Shown here: positions 2,706 through 31,554 of the stretch, one piece after another
How positions within the stretch are numbered: position 1 is the stretch's first letter
Layout of the letters: each line of letters starts with the position of its first letter
IMG/VR virus record: IMGVR_UViG_3300031344_000002
Span: 124,001-188,000 of that record
Strand: one strand, 5' to 3'
DNA: 64,000 nucleotides
Notes under the pieces: model-generated
What the model was told of the DNA's origin: nothing
The model's database searches: none
The model's input: only the letters and a program-made list of their open reading frames with translations
Position numbers and translations under genes: made by a program

Positions 2706-3797
2706 ATGTTGAAATTAACAACCGAAGATTTTATTAAAAAATCGAGGAATATTCATGGTTATAAATATGATTATTCATTAGTTAATTATATTAATAATCA
2801 TATAAAAGTCAAAATAATTTGCCCAAAACACGGAATTTTTGAACAGACAACATATACACATTATAATGGATGTGGTTGTCCTAAATGTGCTGGTCAATTT
2901 ATGAATACTAAATATTTTATTCAAAAAGCAAAAGAAAAACATAATAATAAATATGATTATTCATTAGTTAATTATATTAATAATTATATAAAAGTCAAAA
3001 TAATTTGCTCAAAACATGGTGAATTTTTACAAAGACCTAATGACCATTTATCTGATAAAGGATGTCCAAAATGTAATGGTGGTGTGAAATTAAATTGTGA
3101 GGAATTTATTGAAAAAGCAAAAATAAAACATAGCGATAAATATGATTATTCATTGGTTGATTATATTAACTCAATAACAAATGTTAAAATAATTTGTTCT
3201 ATTCATGGAATATTCAAACAAAAACCAGCCAATCATTTAAGAGGATGTATTTGTCAAAAATGTGCAGCAATAAAAAAAGCAAATAATCGTAAAAAAAGTT
3301 GTGAAGAATTTATTGAACAATCAAATAGAATTCACAATAATAAATATAATTATTCATTGGTTGAATACAAACATGATAAAATAAAAGTTAATATCATTTG
3401 TTCTAAACACGGTGAATTTTTACAAAAACCTAATCATCATTTAAACGGTAATGGATGTCCCAAATGTAATGATTCTAAAGGTGAAAAAAATATTAAAAAA
3501 TTCTTAATGGAAAAAGATATTAAACATGAATGTCAAAAAACGTTTAATAATTGTATAAATGAAAGAAAATTATTTTTTGATTTTTATTTACCCGAACAAA
3601 ATATATGTATTGAATATGATGGTGAACAACATTTTAAAATTGTTAAATATTTTGGAGGAGAAGTTGGATTTAATATACGACAAAAGAGAGACCAAATAAA
3701 AACTAATTATTGTATAGAAAACAACATAAATCTTATAAGAATAAGATATGATGAAAACATTGAAGATAAATTAACACCAATATTAATAAAAAAATAA
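2706..3797 (+). CDS. putative homing endonuclease: four Zn-ribbon repeats plus C-terminal Vsr/DUF559-like PD-(D/E)xK domain
   Basis: 4x KYDYSLVxY...KVKIICxxHG..F.Q...H..G.GCPKC repeats; FDFYLP..NICIEYDGEQHF nuclease motif. Confidence 0.8.
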   Translation: MLKLTTEDFIKKSRNIHGYKYDYSLVNYINNHIKVKIICPKHGIFEQTTYTHYNGCGCPKCAGQFMNTKYFIQKAKEKHNNKYDYSLVNYINNYIKVKIICSKHGEFLQRPNDHLSDKGCPKCNGGVKLNCEEFIEKAKIKHSDKYDYSLVDYINSITNVKIICSIHGIFKQKPANHLRGCICQKCAAIKKANNRKKSCEEFIEQSNRIHNNKYNYSLVEYKHDKIKVNIICSKHGEFLQKPNHHLNGNGCPKCNDSKGEKNIKKFLMEKDIKHECQKTFNNCINERKLFFDFYLPEQNICIEYDGEQHFKIVKYFGGEVGFNIRQKRDQIKTNYCIENNINLIRIRYDENIEDKLTPILIKK

Positions 3798-17058: not shown

Positions 17059-18537
17059 ATGCAAAAAATGAAAACAAAAAAATTATTGTCAACTATTATG
17101 GGAATTATTATTACATTGATTGTATTAATCACATGTAAAAAAGATGATTTTAAAGAAATTGTTGGTACGTGCCCCCAATCACAAATAGAATTTACTGTTG
17201 CATTATCATCAAAACCTCTTGCTGGCGGAACAACAATTGGTGATGGAACATTTCCTAAAGATTCATCGATAACTGTTGCTGCAACTCCAAATACTGGATA
17301 TGTTTTTACTAATTGGACAAATGAAGCAACAATTGTTTCAACAAGTTCAAGTTATACATTTACTTTAACAAAAAATACAACATTAATTGCCAACTTTACT
17401 CCTGTAATTGCTGGAAATTTTGCTGTTATATTATCATCAAAACCTCTTGCTGGCGGAACAACAAATGGTGGTGGTTCATTTCTTGCTGGTTCTTCAGTAA
17501 CAATTAATGCAATACCAAATATTAATTATAAGTTTATTAATTGGACAAAAGGAACAACTATTGTTTCCGTAACCCCTAGTCATACGTTTATTTTAACAAA
17601 AGATACAACATTAATTGCAAATTTTTTACTTAATGCATATACATTAAATGTTACCGCAGTTAATGGTAGTGTCACAAAAACTCCCAATCAATTTACGTAT
17701 AATAGTGGTACTTCGGTTATCCTTATACCTATTCCTGCTTTAGGATATGTATTTAATTCTTGGAGTGGTGATGCAAGTGGTAATATAAATCCTTTAAATA
17801 TTACTATGAATTCTAATAAGAATATTATAGCTAATTTTACTGCAATTATTATTATTTGCCCTACAATTATTGATTTAGGATTATCAGGTAACTTTGCAAT
17901 ATTTGCAGAATCTGGAATTTCAACCACTGGTGTTACTTTAATTACAGGCGATATTGGAGTAAATCCTGTGACATCTACATCAATAACTGGATTTGGATTA
18001 ATTCTTCCAGCAGGTAGTGCATTTTCAACATCAAGTCTTGTTGCCGGAAAAATTTATGCTCCTGATTATGCTTCACCTTCACCTGCTAACATGGTAACCA
18101 CAAGTGGCAATATGCATACAGCATATACAACTGCAAATGGTTTAGTTGTTCCAGCACCTGTTAATGAATTCATGGCTGGTAATCTTAATGGTCAAACTTT
18201 AACTAAAGGTATTTACAAATGGAGTTCTGGCGTTTCAATAACAAATGGTATTGTATTGGATGGTGGTGGTGATAATTGTGCAACATTCATATTCCAAATA
18301 GCTAAAGACCTTACAGTAGCAAATAGTGCAATTATTACATTACAGAATGGTGCTCAAGCAAAGAATATATTTTGGATAGTTGCTGGTAGTGGTGCAATTT
18401 TAGGAACAAACGTTAATTTTAGTGGAAATATTTTATGTAAGACATTGATTTCAGTGAATACTGGTAGTAAAGTTACTGGTAGATTGCTTGCTCAAACGGC
18501 AGTTACATTAAATGCGGTAACAATAGTTAAACCATAA
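17059..18537 (+). CDS. ice-binding family protein (DUF3494) lipoprotein with Listeria-Bacteroides/InlB-B repeats
   Basis: LITC lipobox; three A.P..GY.F..W repeats; C-terminal FAIFAESGIST..ITGDIG..GIYKW..FIFQI..NIFW..GRLLAQTAVTL. Confidence 0.9.
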   Translation: MQKMKTKKLLSTIMGIIITLIVLITCKKDDFKEIVGTCPQSQIEFTVALSSKPLAGGTTIGDGTFPKDSSITVAATPNTGYVFTNWTNEATIVSTSSSYTFTLTKNTTLIANFTPVIAGNFAVILSSKPLAGGTTNGGGSFLAGSSVTINAIPNINYKFINWTKGTTIVSVTPSHTFILTKDTTLIANFLLNAYTLNVTAVNGSVTKTPNQFTYNSGTSVILIPIPALGYVFNSWSGDASGNINPLNITMNSNKNIIANFTAIIIICPTIIDLGLSGNFAIFAESGISTTGVTLITGDIGVNPVTSTSITGFGLILPAGSAFSTSSLVAGKIYAPDYASPSPANMVTTSGNMHTAYTTANGLVVPAPVNEFMAGNLNGQTLTKGIYKWSSGVSITNGIVLDGGGDNCATFIFQIAKDLTVANSAIITLQNGAQAKNIFWIVAGSGAILGTNVNFSGNILCKTLISVNTGSKVTGRLLAQTAVTLNAVTIVKP

Positions 18538-18567
18538 TAATTATAAAGAAAAATAATAAACAAAAAT

Positions 18568-19863
18568 ATGAAAACAAATATTATAAAGAAAATTTTTAAC
18601 ATTAAAACACTTACATTATGTATTTTAATGTTGATTGGTACAAATCTTCAATCACAAGAAAACCAGATAAATAAAAATGCTCAAAATTATGTAGATACTA
18701 CATTAACAAGAAAAGATACAATACCATCATGGTGGTTTGGTGCTGCTGTTGGTGGAAATTTAAATTATTACCGTGGTTCAACCCAAAATGTGAATGCTAA
18801 TTTATTTTCATATCCTGCTTTCCATAATGGTAATGGTATAGGATTATATATTGCACCTGTTGTTATATTTCATAATCCCGAAAAAGTTTTTGGTGGTATG
18901 TTCGAATTAGGATATGATAACCGTAAAGGTAAATTTAATGAAGTAACAACTCCATGTAATTGTCCTGCAGATTTAAAAACAAATTTAAGTTATATAACAA
19001 TTGAACCAAGTATACATATGACACCATTTAAAGGTAATTTTTATTTATTTGCCGGTCCTCGTATGGGAATTACAATCGGAAAATCATTTGTATATAATAA
19101 AGGTAAAAGTGTTGATGGATTAATACCAGCAGAACCTCAATTAAAAGGTAATTTTACTAATATGTATGAAGCAGTAATATCTATGCATATTGGTGCTGGA
19201 TATGATATTATACTTACATCAAATTTTAATGATAGTATTAAAGGTAGTAAAGAAGGTCGAAAATATAATGAAATGGTATTATCGCCATTTATAGATTTCC
19301 ATCCATACTTTGGTCAGAATCCACGCACAATTGAAACATGGAATCTAACTACAATTAGAATAGGTGCAGTACTTAAATTTGGTCATGTAAAGATTCAAGC
19401 AAAAACAAGACCAATTATAATACCAGTTTCTGATACAATAATACCAGTTCCTGTTCCTGTTGTTGTTATACCTGTTATTATAGTTGTTCCAGAACCAATA
19501 AAAATTACTACGGCATATACTTTATATTTCAAATTTGATGAATCAAACCTTGATAATCAAACAATTAATTATTTAGATAATTTAATTAATGATTTGAAAA
19601 AAGATACAACAATTGGTATTCAAATTAAATCATATGCAGATATGAGAGGAACTGAAGATTATAATATAAGTCTTTCAGAAAGACGTGGTAAAGCAGTTGT
19701 TGATTACATGATTAGTAAGGGTATTGATATATCAAGAATTAACTCAACAGCTTATGGTAAAACAAAAATATTTAATGAATATAAAGAAAGTACTAATGAA
19801 ATTGAATACGCATTAAATCGTAGGTCTAATATAATAGTAATTGGTATTGCAAGTAAAAAATAA
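18568..19863 (+). CDS. OmpA-family outer membrane protein (beta-barrel plus OmpA_C)
   Basis: signal peptide; YFKFDES, YADMRG..YN..LSERRG.AV, LNRRS motifs. Confidence 0.9.
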   Translation: MKTNIIKKIFNIKTLTLCILMLIGTNLQSQENQINKNAQNYVDTTLTRKDTIPSWWFGAAVGGNLNYYRGSTQNVNANLFSYPAFHNGNGIGLYIAPVVIFHNPEKVFGGMFELGYDNRKGKFNEVTTPCNCPADLKTNLSYITIEPSIHMTPFKGNFYLFAGPRMGITIGKSFVYNKGKSVDGLIPAEPQLKGNFTNMYEAVISMHIGAGYDIILTSNFNDSIKGSKEGRKYNEMVLSPFIDFHPYFGQNPRTIETWNLTTIRIGAVLKFGHVKIQAKTRPIIIPVSDTIIPVPVPVVVIPVIIVVPEPIKITTAYTLYFKFDESNLDNQTINYLDNLINDLKKDTTIGIQIKSYADMRGTEDYNISLSERRGKAVVDYMISKGIDISRINSTAYGKTKIFNEYKESTNEIEYALNRRSNIIVIGIASKK

Positions 19864-23445: not shown

Positions 23446-24825
23446 ATGAAAATTAAACAGATTTTTGACGAAATTGCTAATGAATCGAGTACTAATGAGA
23501 AGATGAATATCCTTTCAAAGTATAAAGATAATGAACTTTTAGTACGAGTATTATATTTAGCTAATTCAAAACGAATTAAGTTCTATATTAAGCAAATTCC
23601 TTCACATTCTGGAAGTTTAAAAATGTCATTAACTGGTGCGCTAGATTTGTTGTCGACTTTGAGTGATAGAAGTGTTACTGGTTATGATGCAATAGCACAT
23701 TTAATAAATATACTTAATTCAGTTGACCCCGATGATGGATATATTATTGAACGTATTATTGAAAAGGATTGCAAAATTGGTATGGGAACTAGAAATATCA
23801 ATAAGGTGATTCCTGATTTAATAGAACGAACTGGTTATATGGGTTGTAAGCCATATTCAAAGGAATTAATTAATAAATTGTTAGCTAAAGGTACTTGTTA
23901 TAGTCAAGAAAAAATGGATGGTAGATTTGTTAATATTATTATTCAAGGTGGAGAAGTATTGAATGAATCTCGTCAAGGTGAACCAACATTATTAGATAAT
24001 CCAGCATTTATGCAGGAATTAACGCAATTAAAAGATTGTGTATTGAATGCTGAATTAACTATGGGCAAATACAATGGAATTCCAATTTCACGCTATGAAA
24101 GTAATGGAATTATTGCATCTTTAATAAGTATAGCCAATAAAAAATCTGCTGGCGATGATGTTACAAAAGATATTCAAAAACTTGAAGCTAAACATTTACC
24201 ATATAGAGAAGCATTAGATTTAATTCGAGTTACTGCTTGGGATATTTTAACTATTGATGAATATTTTACAAGGAAATGTAATAGGAAATATAAAGAAAGA
24301 TTTGTAGATTTAAATTCAACCTTACAAGGATTTAAAATGTTATCGGTTGTTGAAACTAGAGAAGTTTCTACCATTGAAGAAGTAATGGCACATTTTAATG
24401 AAATTGTTTCTCGTGGTAATGAAGGTACTGTCGTTAAAAGTATGGATGGAGTATGGGCAGATACAAAACCTTCATATCAAGTGAAAATTAAACTGGAAAT
24501 TAATTTAGATTTAAAAATTGTTGGATTTAATTATGGAACAGGAAAGAATTTAAAACTGATTTCATCACTTAATGTTGAATCCGAAGATGGTTTATTAAAA
24601 ACTTCACCAACCGGAATAAATGAAGATGATATGGAATATATTACCACTAATCAAGATAAATTATTAAATACAATTGTTGAAGTTAAATGTTCTGGTTTGT
24701 CACAAGATAGTAGGGGAAATTATTCAGCACTTCATCCTGTTTTTAAATTACTTAGAACAGATAAGACAATTGCCAATACATTAACAGAATGTATTGAAAT
24801 TAATAAATCCTCATCATTACTATAA
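23446..24825 (+). CDS. ATP-dependent DNA ligase (T4 gp30-like)
   Basis: QEKMDG motif I, EGTVVK, VKIK, C-terminal OB fold with HPVF..LRTDK. Confidence 0.92.
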   Translation: MKIKQIFDEIANESSTNEKMNILSKYKDNELLVRVLYLANSKRIKFYIKQIPSHSGSLKMSLTGALDLLSTLSDRSVTGYDAIAHLINILNSVDPDDGYIIERIIEKDCKIGMGTRNINKVIPDLIERTGYMGCKPYSKELINKLLAKGTCYSQEKMDGRFVNIIIQGGEVLNESRQGEPTLLDNPAFMQELTQLKDCVLNAELTMGKYNGIPISRYESNGIIASLISIANKKSAGDDVTKDIQKLEAKHLPYREALDLIRVTAWDILTIDEYFTRKCNRKYKERFVDLNSTLQGFKMLSVVETREVSTIEEVMAHFNEIVSRGNEGTVVKSMDGVWADTKPSYQVKIKLEINLDLKIVGFNYGTGKNLKLISSLNVESEDGLLKTSPTGINEDDMEYITTNQDKLLNTIVEVKCSGLSQDSRGNYSALHPVFKLLRTDKTIANTLTECIEINKSSSLL

Positions 24826-25675: not shown

Positions 25676-26680
25676 ATGAAAAGTTTTACTGAAATTGGTC
25701 AATATCGACAAGTAGTTAGAGAAGTTAAATCACATCATGATTATACTGGTAAAGATGAAAATGGCGATGCCATATATAGTCATACATCTCCATATCCAGT
25801 ATTAACATTTCGTGGTACAGTTAAATTGCATGGAACTAATAGTTCTATTGTTAAATACATTAATGATGGTCAGATTAAATATGATTTTCAAAGTAGAGAA
25901 AGAATAATAGATTTGACCGGAAAAGATGGGGATAATTGTGGTTTCATGAGAGAATTTCAAAAAAAAGATTATCAAAAACTTTTTGATGATATTGATTGTA
26001 AATCATCAATTGCAATTTTTGGCGAATGGTGTGGAAATGGTATTCAAAAGGGCGTTGCAATTGTAGAATTGCCAAAAATGTTTGTAATATTTGCGGTTAA
26101 AATCGATGATGTATATCAAGATATGAATAGCTTCAAACATTTAAAAAATGAAGAACAAAATATTTACAATATTTTACAATTTCCTACATTTTCAATTGAT
26201 ATTGATTTTAACAATCCTGAATTAATTCAAAATAAATTGGTTGAATTAACCACTAATGTTGAAAAAGAATGCCCTGTTGCTAAACAATTTGGTATTACTG
26301 GTATTGGAGAAGGAATTGTTTGGGAACACATCAATGGCAATGAAAGATATATTTTTAAAGTTAAAGGTGAAAAACATCAAAATAGTAAAGTAAAAACTCT
26401 CACAACAGTTAATGTTGAAGAAATTGAAAACATTAAAACATTTGTTGAATATGCAGTAACTGAAAATAGATTATTGCAAGGAATTGATAAAATGAGAGAA
26501 CTTGGTTTACCTATTGAAAGTAAAACCACTGGTGATTATTTAAGATGGGTTTATAATGATGTTATTAAAGAAGAAAGTGATACTATTGCAGAAAATAATA
26601 TTGATGTAAAGAAAATAGGTTCTGCAATTTCAGCAAAAGCCAGAATGTTTTGGTTAAATTATTTAAACACGCATTTATAA
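25676..26680 (+). CDS. RNA ligase, Rnl2 family
   Basis: VKLHGTN, QSR, FGEWCG, GEGIVW, FKVKGEKH. Confidence 0.88.
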   Translation: MKSFTEIGQYRQVVREVKSHHDYTGKDENGDAIYSHTSPYPVLTFRGTVKLHGTNSSIVKYINDGQIKYDFQSRERIIDLTGKDGDNCGFMREFQKKDYQKLFDDIDCKSSIAIFGEWCGNGIQKGVAIVELPKMFVIFAVKIDDVYQDMNSFKHLKNEEQNIYNILQFPTFSIDIDFNNPELIQNKLVELTTNVEKECPVAKQFGITGIGEGIVWEHINGNERYIFKVKGEKHQNSKVKTLTTVNVEEIENIKTFVEYAVTENRLLQGIDKMRELGLPIESKTTGDYLRWVYNDVIKEESDTIAENNIDVKKIGSAISAKARMFWLNYLNTHL

Positions 26681-29336: not shown

Positions 29337-29744
29337 ATGGAAAAAGAAATAAAGATTAACGTACCAGATGGTTTTGAAATTGATAAAGATAATTCTACTT
29401 TTGAATTAATTAAATTCAAACCTGTTGTAAATAAGGAAGATAAGAATAAATCTATGTCAGATTTCTTATTTCAGATGTTTAATAATGCTGTATGCAAAAT
29501 TACTGGTGAAAAAGAATTAATATATTATAAATTAGATGGATATAATCCAAATTCTGATAATAATAAGTGGTTATTTCAACAGGATTGGAAAAGTGGTAGA
29601 CTTTGGATAAGATATACTTTAATTTGGCAAATTTTCGAAGAAAGATTTGGTCTTAACTACGAGCAAATCAGAGATTTCATTCAAGATTGGGTGGAAACCA
29701 ACCTAAATTGGAAGGGTTTAACACCCCAACGATTCTTGCCATAG
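29337..29744 (+). CDS. array-associated protein A, whose C-terminus is encoded by repeat 1 and spacer 1 of array 1
   Basis: 135 aa ending ...IQDWVETNLNWKGLTP-QRFLP*; paralog of 30748-31161. Confidence 0.8.
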   Translation: MEKEIKINVPDGFEIDKDNSTFELIKFKPVVNKEDKNKSMSDFLFQMFNNAVCKITGEKELIYYKLDGYNPNSDNNKWLFQQDWKSGRLWIRYTLIWQIFEERFGLNYEQIRDFIQDWVETNLNWKGLTPQRFLP

Positions 29745-30055
29745 ACTATTTTTTTGGTGGAAACCAACCTAAATTGGAAGGGTTTAACACCTGTAATTGG
29801 TGTTGAGATAAGTGCCAAAATGGTGGAAACCAACCTAAATTGGAAGGGTTTAACACCTGTAAATGCAATCTTTCTAAAGGAAGTAAAGGTGGAAACCAAC
29901 CTAAATTGGAAGGGTTTAACACCTAAACATCCTTATAGTCATCTTGTGTTCGGGGTGGAAACCAACCTAAATTGGAAGGGTTTAACACCACATAGACATT
30001 GACATAATCTGCGTTATACGGTGGAAACCAACCTAAATTGGAAGGGTTTAACATA
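29690..30055. CRISPR. CRISPR-like array 1: six 36-nt repeats and five 30-nt spacers; no cas genes
   Basis: GGTGGAAACCAACCTAAATTGGAAGGGTTTAACACC at 29690, 29756, 29822, 29888, 29954, 30020 (last ends TA instead of CC); spacers unique. Confidence 0.9.
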
Positions 30056-30111
30056 TTGATTGTAAAAATAATAACAATAATATCAACAACTGAAACTAAA
30101 TTTGAAGAATA

Positions 30112-30711
30112 ATGAATATACGAAAAATTTTAAATTTACCAAATAAAGCTCAAAGAAGATTTATTGAACTTAGTAATGAAATTGTTTTAAATAATTGTGA
30201 AGTTATTGCTCGTGAAGAAATGGAAGAACAGCAAGATAATAAACTTTTTCATGACAGTCGGTGTCCAATATGTAAAAGTAGAAAAGATATTATAAATAAA
30301 ATTGTTAATATTCAAAGTCTTAATCATATTGAAGGTAATTTCAAATTTGGTTTTGGTAAAATAAAAACTGTTATCACAACTAATACTTATAAAGTAAATC
30401 ATTGTAATTCTTGTGGTAATGAATGGGAAATGTATAAAACCAAACCAATTTCACGAACTAATATATTAAATGTTGCTTTTAAATATTTGAAAGAAATATT
30501 GGAAGACCCAGAAAAAAATAAACAAGATTATAAAATGGAAGCCATACAGGTTTTTGAAAATTCATATGCAGAAACATTGTATGAACTTAATGTATGGGTG
30601 AGAACTGATATTAAATTATCTGTTTTAAGAAAACATTATAAATCAGTATATGACAAATATATATTTCCACAAGTTTCTCAATCATTTGTTGATAAATATA
30701 TTAAAGAATGA
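30112..30711 (+). CDS. Zn-ribbon protein between the two array modules
   Basis: CPIC ... HCNSCGNEW. Confidence 0.6.
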   Translation: MNIRKILNLPNKAQRRFIELSNEIVLNNCEVIAREEMEEQQDNKLFHDSRCPICKSRKDIINKIVNIQSLNHIEGNFKFGFGKIKTVITTNTYKVNHCNSCGNEWEMYKTKPISRTNILNVAFKYLKEILEDPEKNKQDYKMEAIQVFENSYAETLYELNVWVRTDIKLSVLRKHYKSVYDKYIFPQVSQSFVDKYIKE

Positions 30712-30747
30712 TAATATTGAAATAATAATATTTAAAAATAATTTTTT

Positions 30748-31161
30748 ATGGAAAATAAAGAAATAAAGATTAACGTACCTGATGGGTTTGAAATTGATAA
30801 AGATAATTCTACTTTTGAATTAATTAAATTCAAACCTGTTGTAAATAAAGAAGATAATAAATCCAAAGAAATGTCGGATTTATTATTCTCAATGTTTAAT
30901 AACACTGTGTGCAAAATTACTGGTGAAAAAGAAATAACTTATTATAAATTAAATGGATATAATCCAAATTCTGATGATAATGAGTGGTTATTTCAACAGG
31001 ATTGGAAAAACGGTAGATTATGGGTAAAATATTCACTTATTTGGAAGGTTTTTGAAGAAAGATTTGGTCTTAACTACGACCAAATCAGAGATTTCATTCA
31101 AGATTGGGTGGAAACCAACCTAAATTGGAAGGGTTTAACACCAATTCAAGGCGGATATTGA
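30748..31161 (+). CDS. array-associated protein B, whose C-terminus is encoded by repeat 1 and spacer 1 of array 2
   Basis: 137 aa ending ...IQDWVETNLNWKGLTP-IQGGY*; paralog of 29337-29744. Confidence 0.8.
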   Translation: MENKEIKINVPDGFEIDKDNSTFELIKFKPVVNKEDNKSKEMSDLLFSMFNNTVCKITGEKEITYYKLNGYNPNSDDNEWLFQQDWKNGRLWVKYSLIWKVFEERFGLNYDQIRDFIQDWVETNLNWKGLTPIQGGY

Positions 31162-31340
31162 CGACAGCAAAAGGTGGAAACCAACCTAAATTGGAAGGGT
31201 TTAACACCGTTGCCAGTAATGCCCTTGCGGAACTATATGGTGGAAACCAACCTAAATTGGAAGGGTTTAACACCAGAAAAGGATAACTGGTTTTCCTATT
31301 GTTTGGTGGAAACCAACCTAAATTGGAAGGGTTTAACACC
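31107..31340. CRISPR. CRISPR-like array 2: four 36-nt repeats and three 30-nt spacers
   Basis: same repeat at 31107, 31173, 31239, 31305; no spacer shared with array 1. Confidence 0.9.
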
Positions 31341-31554
31341 AGATAAATAAATTAATAAGAAAAAATTATGAATAAAATTATATTAAAAATAATTGATAAA
31401 AAAATAGTTGAAAAGGATTTCAGTTTGATAACTAAAAAGTTTGAAACTATTGAAGAACAAATTATAGAAACGAAAAAAATGTATGAATTTGAGAATGATA
31501 AAATTCAAATGAATAAAATTATTAAACAAATAAAAAAAATATAAAATTAAAACT

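Follow-up and report, generated by a model that had tools for sequence, protein, structure and literature searches.

Candidate CRISPR-type arrays joined to the coding 3' end of a conserved phage gene family

A stretch of 64,000 nucleotides (positions 124,001 to 188,000, i.e., ~30% of the 218-kb viral contig IMGVR_UViG_3300031344_000002; here called the window) contains two small genes, each of which runs directly into an array of direct repeats with unique spacers. This layout raises the question of whether such gene-plus-array modules are CRISPR arrays and, if so, how they grow and what purpose the spacers serve. The reading put forward below is that of a phage-borne CRISPR-type array that takes its leader and first repeat from the 3' part of a conserved gene and whose spacers serve as guides. 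For this reading as a whole the case is evenly balanced; growth of the arrays by CRISPR-type integration (i.e., integration of the Cas1-Cas2 type), taken by itself, is likely.

The 36-nt repeat, GGTGGAAACCAACCTAAATTGGAAGGGTTTAACACC, occurs ten times in the window, always on the + strand, where no copy is expected from shuffled sequence. The copies start at 29690, 29756, 29822, 29888, 29954 and 30020 in array 1, with a period of 66 nt, and at 31107, 31173, 31239 and 31305 in array 2 (Table 1). Nine of the ten are identical, and the eight spacers, all of which are exactly 30 nt long, are all different. A CRISPR array is defined by direct repeats of 23-55 nt and by unique spacers of near-constant length between them, both of which are found here; the non-coding, AT-rich leader of such an array is missing, and an open reading frame (ORF) under purifying selection spans both the upstream sequence and repeat 1. 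Both ORFs read through the first repeat, where they encode VETNLNWKGLTP, and each is ended by the first stop in spacer 1. An earlier inspection of the window (the first-pass annotation) had described two paralogous genes, each fused to an array of the same 36-nt repeat with 30-nt spacers, as well as a first repeat that is coding and not preceded by a non-coding leader; a recount agrees with this description. Its further suggestion that spacers were acquired independently after duplication of the module also holds, as no spacer is common to the two arrays.

Table 1. Positions of the module components and the intervening reading frame in the window.
Feature	Position	Strand	Description
Module 1 gene	29337..29744	+	135 aa; repeat 1 forms the last 36 bases ahead of the variable tail
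Array 1	29690..30055	+	6 repeats, 5 unique 30-nt spacers; repeat 1 (29690-29725) coding
Degenerate gene-distal repeat of array 1	30020..30055	+	2 mismatches at the 3' end
Module 2 gene	30748..31161	+	137 aa; paralogue of the module 1 gene
Array 2	31107..31340	+	4 identical repeats, 3 unique 30-nt spacers; repeat 1 (31107-31142) coding
Two gene-proximal spacer-repeat units of array 2	31143..31274	+	absent from a 98.9%-identical strain
Original C-terminal tail Pro-Asp-Lys-stop	31339..31350	+	displaced behind the last repeat; compare other loci
Intervening ORF	30112..30711	+	199 aa; CxxC...CxxC motifs; zinc-ribbon matches sub-threshold only

A third gene-plus-array module, with six repeats, is found outside the window on the same 218-kb contig. 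Its repeat differs at two bases (ACC-AAC to ACT-AAT), both of which are synonymous in the frame of the gene, and the 3' end of its own gene shows the same ACT-AAT changes. Pairwise comparison of the three paralogues gave ratios of nonsynonymous to synonymous substitution rates (dN/dS) of 0.20-0.23 at dS values of 0.32-0.38, which shows that the module genes are real and evolve under purifying selection. The fifth repeat of the third module (4623-4658 in L006/L007) carries ACC-AAC, as do the window arrays, and the other five carry ACT-AAT, a distribution that suggests that units may have been exchanged between arrays of one genome.

The fusion of gene and array is a family trait and not an accident of one phage. 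A word-indexed search yielded 46 homologues (alignment identity 38-98%). Each of them closes with W-[VI]-E-T-N-x-x-W-x-G-L-T-P and then an unrelated tail, and several translate through ten spacer residues into a second copy of their own peptide. With a profile search of 1.84 billion representative proteins the family extends to 753 clusters at E up to 0.001. In its distant members the C-terminal peptide drifts (e.g., VEEHFKWNGLTP) and the ORFs still enter a second copy of their own peptide; such a copy is present in 40 of the 179 members of up to 210 aa, at a spacing of 22 aa in 39 of these and of 21 aa in one. The 21 distinct gene copies retrieved from viral, metagenomic and NCBI contigs are accompanied by one to six repeats each, which match the last 36 coding bases of that very gene, and the 29 spacers tabulated over these copies measure 30 nt (25 spacers), 29 nt (two) or 31 nt (two). 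The 66-nt period is kept in members of ~25-35% identity on contigs with a guanine-plus-cytosine (GC) content of 24%, 39% and 42%. The proposal of the first-pass annotation to ask whether homologues are consistently followed by arrays thus has a positive answer down to ~25% identity, with a repeat that co-varies with the 3' end of its own gene.

Genomes carry two to five modules, with up to five spacers per array. Five of the 21 gene copies have a single "repeat" only, i.e., the gene end itself, so the C-terminus also exists without an array. At the other extreme, five tandem gene-plus-mini-array modules are fused as a single 760-aa ORF on one 148-kb phage contig (L023, 10001-12283; 42% GC), where no spacer contains a stop. 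An IS605 OrfB/TnpB gene lies 9 kb upstream of this ORF. The neighbouring genes of the modules vary from phage to phage, so the protein alone accompanies the array throughout. The modules are embedded among phage genes, and the helicase is closest to those of crAss-like and Bacteroides phages. No homologue was found with tblastn in 50,697 GenBank phages. An unannotated, intergenic stretch of ~105 bp in the crAss-like phage cr116_1 (L004 2501-2605; MT774389.1 9303-9407) resembles the start of the module gene (METKELKIQAPKGYEIDKE...), has neither the C-terminal part nor an array and looks like a remnant. A 7.4-kb contig (L020, JALNXG010000108.1) in a Melioribacteraceae metagenome-assembled genome has the same gene, repeat and spacer as the IMG/VR viral contig L017, an observation that either stems from faulty binning or hints at Ignavibacteriota as the host.

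The arrays are polarised, with degenerate repeats at the end that faces away from the gene. The number of mismatches to repeat 1 rises with the distance from the gene (0, 2 and 4 in L010; 0, 1 and 4 in L026) and amounts to 7-8 in the last copies of L012, L014 and L015, i.e., the distal decay seen in array 1 recurs in all of these five loci. A strain that is 98.9% identical at the nucleotide level over the region (L038, together with the fragment L037) has an identical array 1, and its array 2 contains the distal spacer only. Because exactly the two gene-proximal units of array 2 are missing from this strain, the array grows at the gene end, and, as judged from this comparison, these units are the most recent acquisitions; the difference within the strain pair further indicates that the locus is currently active. 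The assignment of the growing end to the 3' end of the gene, which had been made in the first-pass annotation from the position of the degenerate repeat, is thereby borne out. The position of the tail agrees with this polarity: in L008 and L022 an Asp-Lys(-Lys)-stop tail similar to that of array 2 comes after the last repeat, and in the array-less L011 it stands directly after the single repeat; L021 and L006 have other short Lys-rich tails.

These observations can be accommodated by a mechanism in which each new 30-bp spacer would enter where the gene body meets repeat 1, with duplication of the 36-bp repeat each time, such that every insertion would push the older units, along with the original Asp-Lys-stop tail, further downstream. 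Insertion with repeat duplication is the reaction of a Cas1-Cas2 integrase, for which the measured 36-bp duplication and 30-bp insertion, the polarity, the distal decay, the foreign origin of the spacers (see below) and the gain of units between strains argue jointly. Repeat 1 would act as the template of every new repeat and is at the same time a coding stretch under purifying selection, so that all repeats would copy the 3' end of their own gene. The 36/30 geometry, the conserved repeat ends and the variable middle are traits of type II adaptation. Because the enzyme is absent from the window, we infer that the host or a different part of the 218-kb phage genome would provide it.

The pattern of repeat conservation bears on this mechanism. 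Among 23 diverse first repeats, T3, A6, A7, G22, C33, C35 and C36 are invariant, and G1, G5, A12, A18, A23, T30, A32 and A34 are kept in at least 90%; the repeat ends, GGTnGAA and ACACC, are kept and the middle varies. Variation falls largely at third codon positions, as expected from selection on the protein. A further constraint, on the nucleotide sequence itself, is indicated by the wobble base of the last Thr codon, which is A in 22 of the 23 repeats across several divergent lineages, and by the fact that AAG and ACC, both rare codons, persist in phages of 25-30% GC. Cas1-Cas2 of type II-A systems with a 36-bp repeat recognises the leader-repeat junction, and the second cut is measured from an element at repeat positions 28-32 (Kim 2019, PMC6895254). 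The conservation pattern described here matches this requirement.

The spacers are richer in GC than the locus that carries them in 25 of 29 cases (mean z +0.81, p = 2e-5), and the number of in-frame stops, 12 observed against 18.9 expected, is not depleted beyond that in the other two frames (22 and 10), from which it follows that the spacers are foreign and non-coding. They would be drawn from foreign DNA that includes close relatives of the carrier phage. Spacer 2 of locus L012 agrees at 27 of 30 positions with the gene directly upstream of the module to which it belongs (null maximum 22-23/30), the only near-match that survived shuffled controls. Since the two repeats that flank it are identical to each other, this spacer has not drifted, and since in addition two of the three differences are synonymous in the matched gene, it derives from the orthologue of a close relative; the orthologue of another relative, which is 88% identical, matches at 20 of 30 positions. 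A transcript of the L012 array would be antisense to the mRNA of the matched gene, a single case to which little weight is given. Spacer 1 of the same array (L012 4292-4321) holds an internal 12-nt direct duplication (TGTTGCTCGATT twice), and its third, degenerate repeat has lost the 3' end and now contains the start codon of a downstream HNH endonuclease gene.

What the spacers would be used for is suggested by a precedent: in phage mini-arrays, spacers aim at neighbouring genes of close relatives rather than at the carrier itself (Medvedeva 2019, PMC6858448). The array would be transcribed as a 3' extension of the mRNA of the gene and, after processing, would most likely supply guides to a trans-acting Cas effector in the competition between phages. 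The one protospacer and the precedent make this the best-supported account of the purpose of the array, although several results weigh against the guide reading. The protospacer evidence is confined to one of 29 spacers, with 27 matches out of 30. For none of the 13 spacers of the phage under study did the window, 355 kb of related loci or GenBank phages (three arrays compared) contain a protospacer, and four of these 13, searched as exact 24-mers, have no match in IMG/VR, where five exact spacer pieces of 22-24 nt were compared. Among the matches listed by PADLOC and Pfam for the 60 window ORFs of at least 110 aa there is no Cas1, Cas2, Cas6, Cas9, Cas12 or Cas13, in agreement with the earlier statement that the 64 kb lack cas genes, and none lies within 10 kb on either side of the module in L021, L022, L023 and L030; cas genes beside the array, as in a CRISPR-Cas locus, are thus found neither in the 64 kb nor in the flanks of these four contigs.

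Searches for a host array with the repeat of the window, which used fixed patterns and would miss a host repeat that shares only the ends, returned phage modules and chance matches only. Applied to one genome per species for 185,579 species, a codon-degenerate pattern gave three loci, two of them chance matches and one a phage module, and no bacterial array; the 30-nt core found phage modules only in the JGI metagenomes; ORFs derived from the array in two reading frames had no counterpart outside this phage contig among 5.8 billion proteins; and a plasmid collection gave a chance match only. At the level of RNA, the window repeat has a predicted hairpin of -10.9 kcal/mol. A conserved hairpin was rejected, with 69% of cells paired, which is no better than in shuffles, and with no consensus from RNAalifold. 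No anti-repeat of the kind present in a trans-activating CRISPR RNA (tracrRNA) was found in the 64-kb window, where complementarity did not exceed the shuffled level, and the repeat matches none of the Rfam CRISPR-DR families at the gathering threshold or at E = 10.

The protein itself gives few clues to its function. The core domain (95 aa) is modelled with high confidence (predicted local distance difference test, pLDDT, 95.8; predicted template modelling score, pTM, 0.84) as a helix, a four-stranded meander and two further helices, and in the model the last helix ends, and a disordered tail begins, within the stretch encoded by the repeat. The first-pass annotation had recommended structure prediction and Foldseek. 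Foldseek found no relative of the confident core model in the PDB (best E-value 0.56) and nothing significant for the full-length model in the PDB and BFVD. No match in Pfam, PHROGs, PADLOC or NCBIfam names the protein, its close members or its distant members. Ntox23, a predicted toxin domain in Pfam, was rejected at 17.4 bits against a gathering cut-off of 26.2; even at E = 0.1 or 0.01 it is seen in eight of 46 close members and in none of 111 distant ones. Across the wide family only a Tyr, a Trp and the terminal Thr-Pro are near-invariant, which makes an enzyme unlikely, and the members are mostly acidic (median isoelectric point, pI, 5.8). In the earlier proposal the protein would bind or process RNA and the unit would be self-sufficient; the protein has no recognisable fold or catalytic motif. 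The persistence of the fusion across the whole family suggests that the protein is probably an accessory or a partner of the array locus.

Other explanations of the modules have to be weighed against phage-borne guides. In one of them, an adaptation decoy or "spacer sink", the 3' end of the gene would mimic a leader-repeat junction and divert prespacers of the host Cas1-Cas2 from the host array into the replicating phage DNA, and the arrays would be a record of this diversion, never used as guides. Only what an integrase needs, i.e., the repeat ends and the 36-bp spacing, is conserved, and what an effector would need is not: there is no conserved hairpin, no anti-repeat in the window and no host array with the same repeat among the searches made; several modules per genome would strengthen the sink. 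During infection, a decoy should mostly collect prespacers from its own phage; in fact, none of the spacers is an exact match to its carrier, the spacers are higher in GC than the carrier and the sole protospacer found comes from a relative. The arrays are, moreover, inherited stably across samples, and the benefit would arise at the level of the population only, for which reasons we regard this explanation as rather unlikely. In another, the small protein would recognise the repeat in its own 3' end and either attract an integrase to the gene that encodes it or bear the spacer RNAs as antisense guides, with no canonical Cas effector involved. There are parallels in TnpB and IscB, where the guide-RNA scaffold overlaps the end of the own ORF, and in transposase ORFs of insertion sequences (IS), which run into the terminal repeat. 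The protein is the only component common to all loci, with neighbours that differ, the fusion persists over 753 clusters while the repeat drifts, gene and array have been duplicated as one unit and no cognate host repeat was found. Against this stand the lack of an invariant polar, possibly catalytic residue across the wide family, a median pI that is unusual for a nucleic-acid binder and a fold with no relative among solved structures; nor can a 135-aa protein alone explain the measured 36-bp duplication and 30-bp insertion. This self-contained arrangement is, on balance, unlikely. That the protein and the repeat in its own 3' end form a co-evolving, self-contained unit, in which the protein would recognise its own gene end as DNA or RNA and either steer the measured insertion there or carry spacer RNA guides, again with no canonical Cas effector, is an idea that we entertain tentatively; if true, the unit would be a minimal phage-owned adaptive module, coupled as TnpB is to its omega RNA. 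The decoy and the self-contained module owe their remaining weight to the fact that no cognate host repeat and no conserved RNA structure were found.

In off-target integration by chance ("neo-CRISPR"), the protein would need its V-E...T-P C-terminus for a function of its own, this sequence would happen to be a tolerated target of Cas1-Cas2 and the arrays would be neutral scars. The C-terminal tail is disordered in the model and can thus vary freely, five of the 21 gene copies have no array and distal repeats decay, all of which speak for such scars. However, the wobble A in 22 of 23 repeats and the persistent AAG and ACC codons point to selection at the nucleotide level, and most members of a very wide family carry arrays, always with the 66-nt period. 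Pure accident is disfavoured by the family-wide persistence of the fusion together with this nucleotide-level constraint, and we consider it quite improbable. The modules might, finally, not be CRISPR-like at all, if the units were translated cassettes that provide alternative C-terminal tails or form a multi-core precursor peptide. A period of 66 nt corresponds to 22 codons, which keeps the repeats in frame, and some ORFs read through several units, but spacers of 29 and 31 nt break the frame, in-frame stops (12 against 18.9 expected) lie within the range of the other frames (22 and 10), and both window arrays have a stop in spacer 1. Since the spacers show no coding signal, this explanation was rejected as extremely improbable.

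The intervening 199-aa ORF (Table 1) is not a conserved module part, as module-adjacent genes vary among loci. The window also holds an RNA-repair set composed of an RNA ligase (25676-26680), two HAD "Swiss Army Knife" RNA-repair domains, NADAR, two NUDIX and two R2K ATP-grasp proteins, which may counter RNA-cleaving host defences; an ATP-dependent DNA ligase (23446-24825) is found beside it. A free-standing HNH homing endonuclease is encoded at 2706-3797 (phrog_559, E = 2e-91), and HNH genes directly follow the arrays in L010-L012. At 17059-19863, an OmpA-domain protein comes after an ice-binding-like protein with InlB B-repeats; both are of a surface type that is unusual for a phage and fits a Bacteroidota host. 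The largest unexplained window protein is an 881-aa ORF at 22-2667 with no match in Pfam, PADLOC, NCBIfam or PDB sequences and one marginal PHROGs match, to phrog_30268 of unknown function (E 0.00035).

Among known systems, the modules can be compared with virus-borne mini-CRISPR arrays (Medvedeva 2019, PMC6858448), which are defined as arrays without cas genes on a viral genome, as is the case for the IMG/VR viral contig described here. Likenesses are the viral genome, the absence of cas genes nearby, the small number of spacers and, in L012, a spacer directed at a close relative's neighbouring gene instead of the carrier. In contrast to those mini-arrays, the leader and repeat 1 are here a coding 3' end, across a family of 753 clusters; mini-arrays also normally copy the repeat of their host, whereas the fixed-pattern searches found no matching host array, which weighs against the main reading. 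With type II arrays (Kim 2019, PMC6895254) the modules share the 36-bp repeat, the ~30-bp spacers, insertion at the leader-proximal repeat, conservation of both repeat ends and an unstructured repeat. They differ in that the leader is coding, that the 64 kb contain no cas9, cas1, cas2 or tracrRNA anti-repeat and that the repeat matches no Rfam CRISPR-DR family.

The type VI-B repeat is likewise 36 nt long, with 5'-GUUG and CAAC-3' ends and a poly-U loop (Smargon 2016 preprint), and type II-C Cas1 can fill VI-B arrays in trans, the repeats being of 36 bp in both systems (Hoikkala 2021, PMC8092290). The 36/30 layout, the four complementary end bases of the window repeat and the lack of adaptation genes of its own resemble type VI-B (Cas13b). 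Unlike in type VI-B, the window repeat ends in GGUG/CACC, with the loop CUAAAU in place of a poly-U loop, repeats of relatives start with GGUA or GAUA, the hairpin is not a conserved secondary structure and the window has no cas13b. Racr elements, i.e., solitary repeat units, and viral arrays that resemble CRISPR RNA (crRNA) are also phage-borne repeats, sometimes in arrays, beside small proteins (PMC10651486; bioRxiv 10.1101/2024.10.29.618823). These elements are non-coding, however, and share at least 90% identity with a known host repeat, whereas the first unit is coding here and no Rfam CRISPR-DR family matches at E up to 10. SRUFinder compares candidates with a catalogue of 17,823 repeats. 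The main survey of phage repeat units, in which no type VI units were found, masked confident ORFs before searching and would for this reason miss the class described here.

A different kind of likeness is offered by the OMEGA systems (TnpB/IscB), in which the guide-RNA scaffold overlaps the 3' end of the own ORF. There, too, the end of an ORF doubles as the start of an adjoining guide-like RNA element, such that the two are inherited together; the modules differ from OMEGA in that the protein has 135 aa and no RuvC or HNH domain, that there are several spacer units instead of one guide and that transposon ends are absent. The designation "undescribed system" in the first-pass annotation goes too far: virus-borne CRISPR arrays that lack cas genes are already known, and so are solitary repeat units and viral crRNA-like arrays. 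Arrays in which the leader and repeat 1 are the coding end of a conserved protein family were not found described in the literature searched. It is this fusion, maintained over hundreds of protein clusters and in phages of 24-42% GC, that sets the modules apart from the systems above: a natural case in which one sequence would be both the C-terminus of a protein and an integration target, and a testable system for spacer acquisition by a phage, for an integrase that accepts divergent repeats and for the use of such arrays against other phages or against host adaptation.

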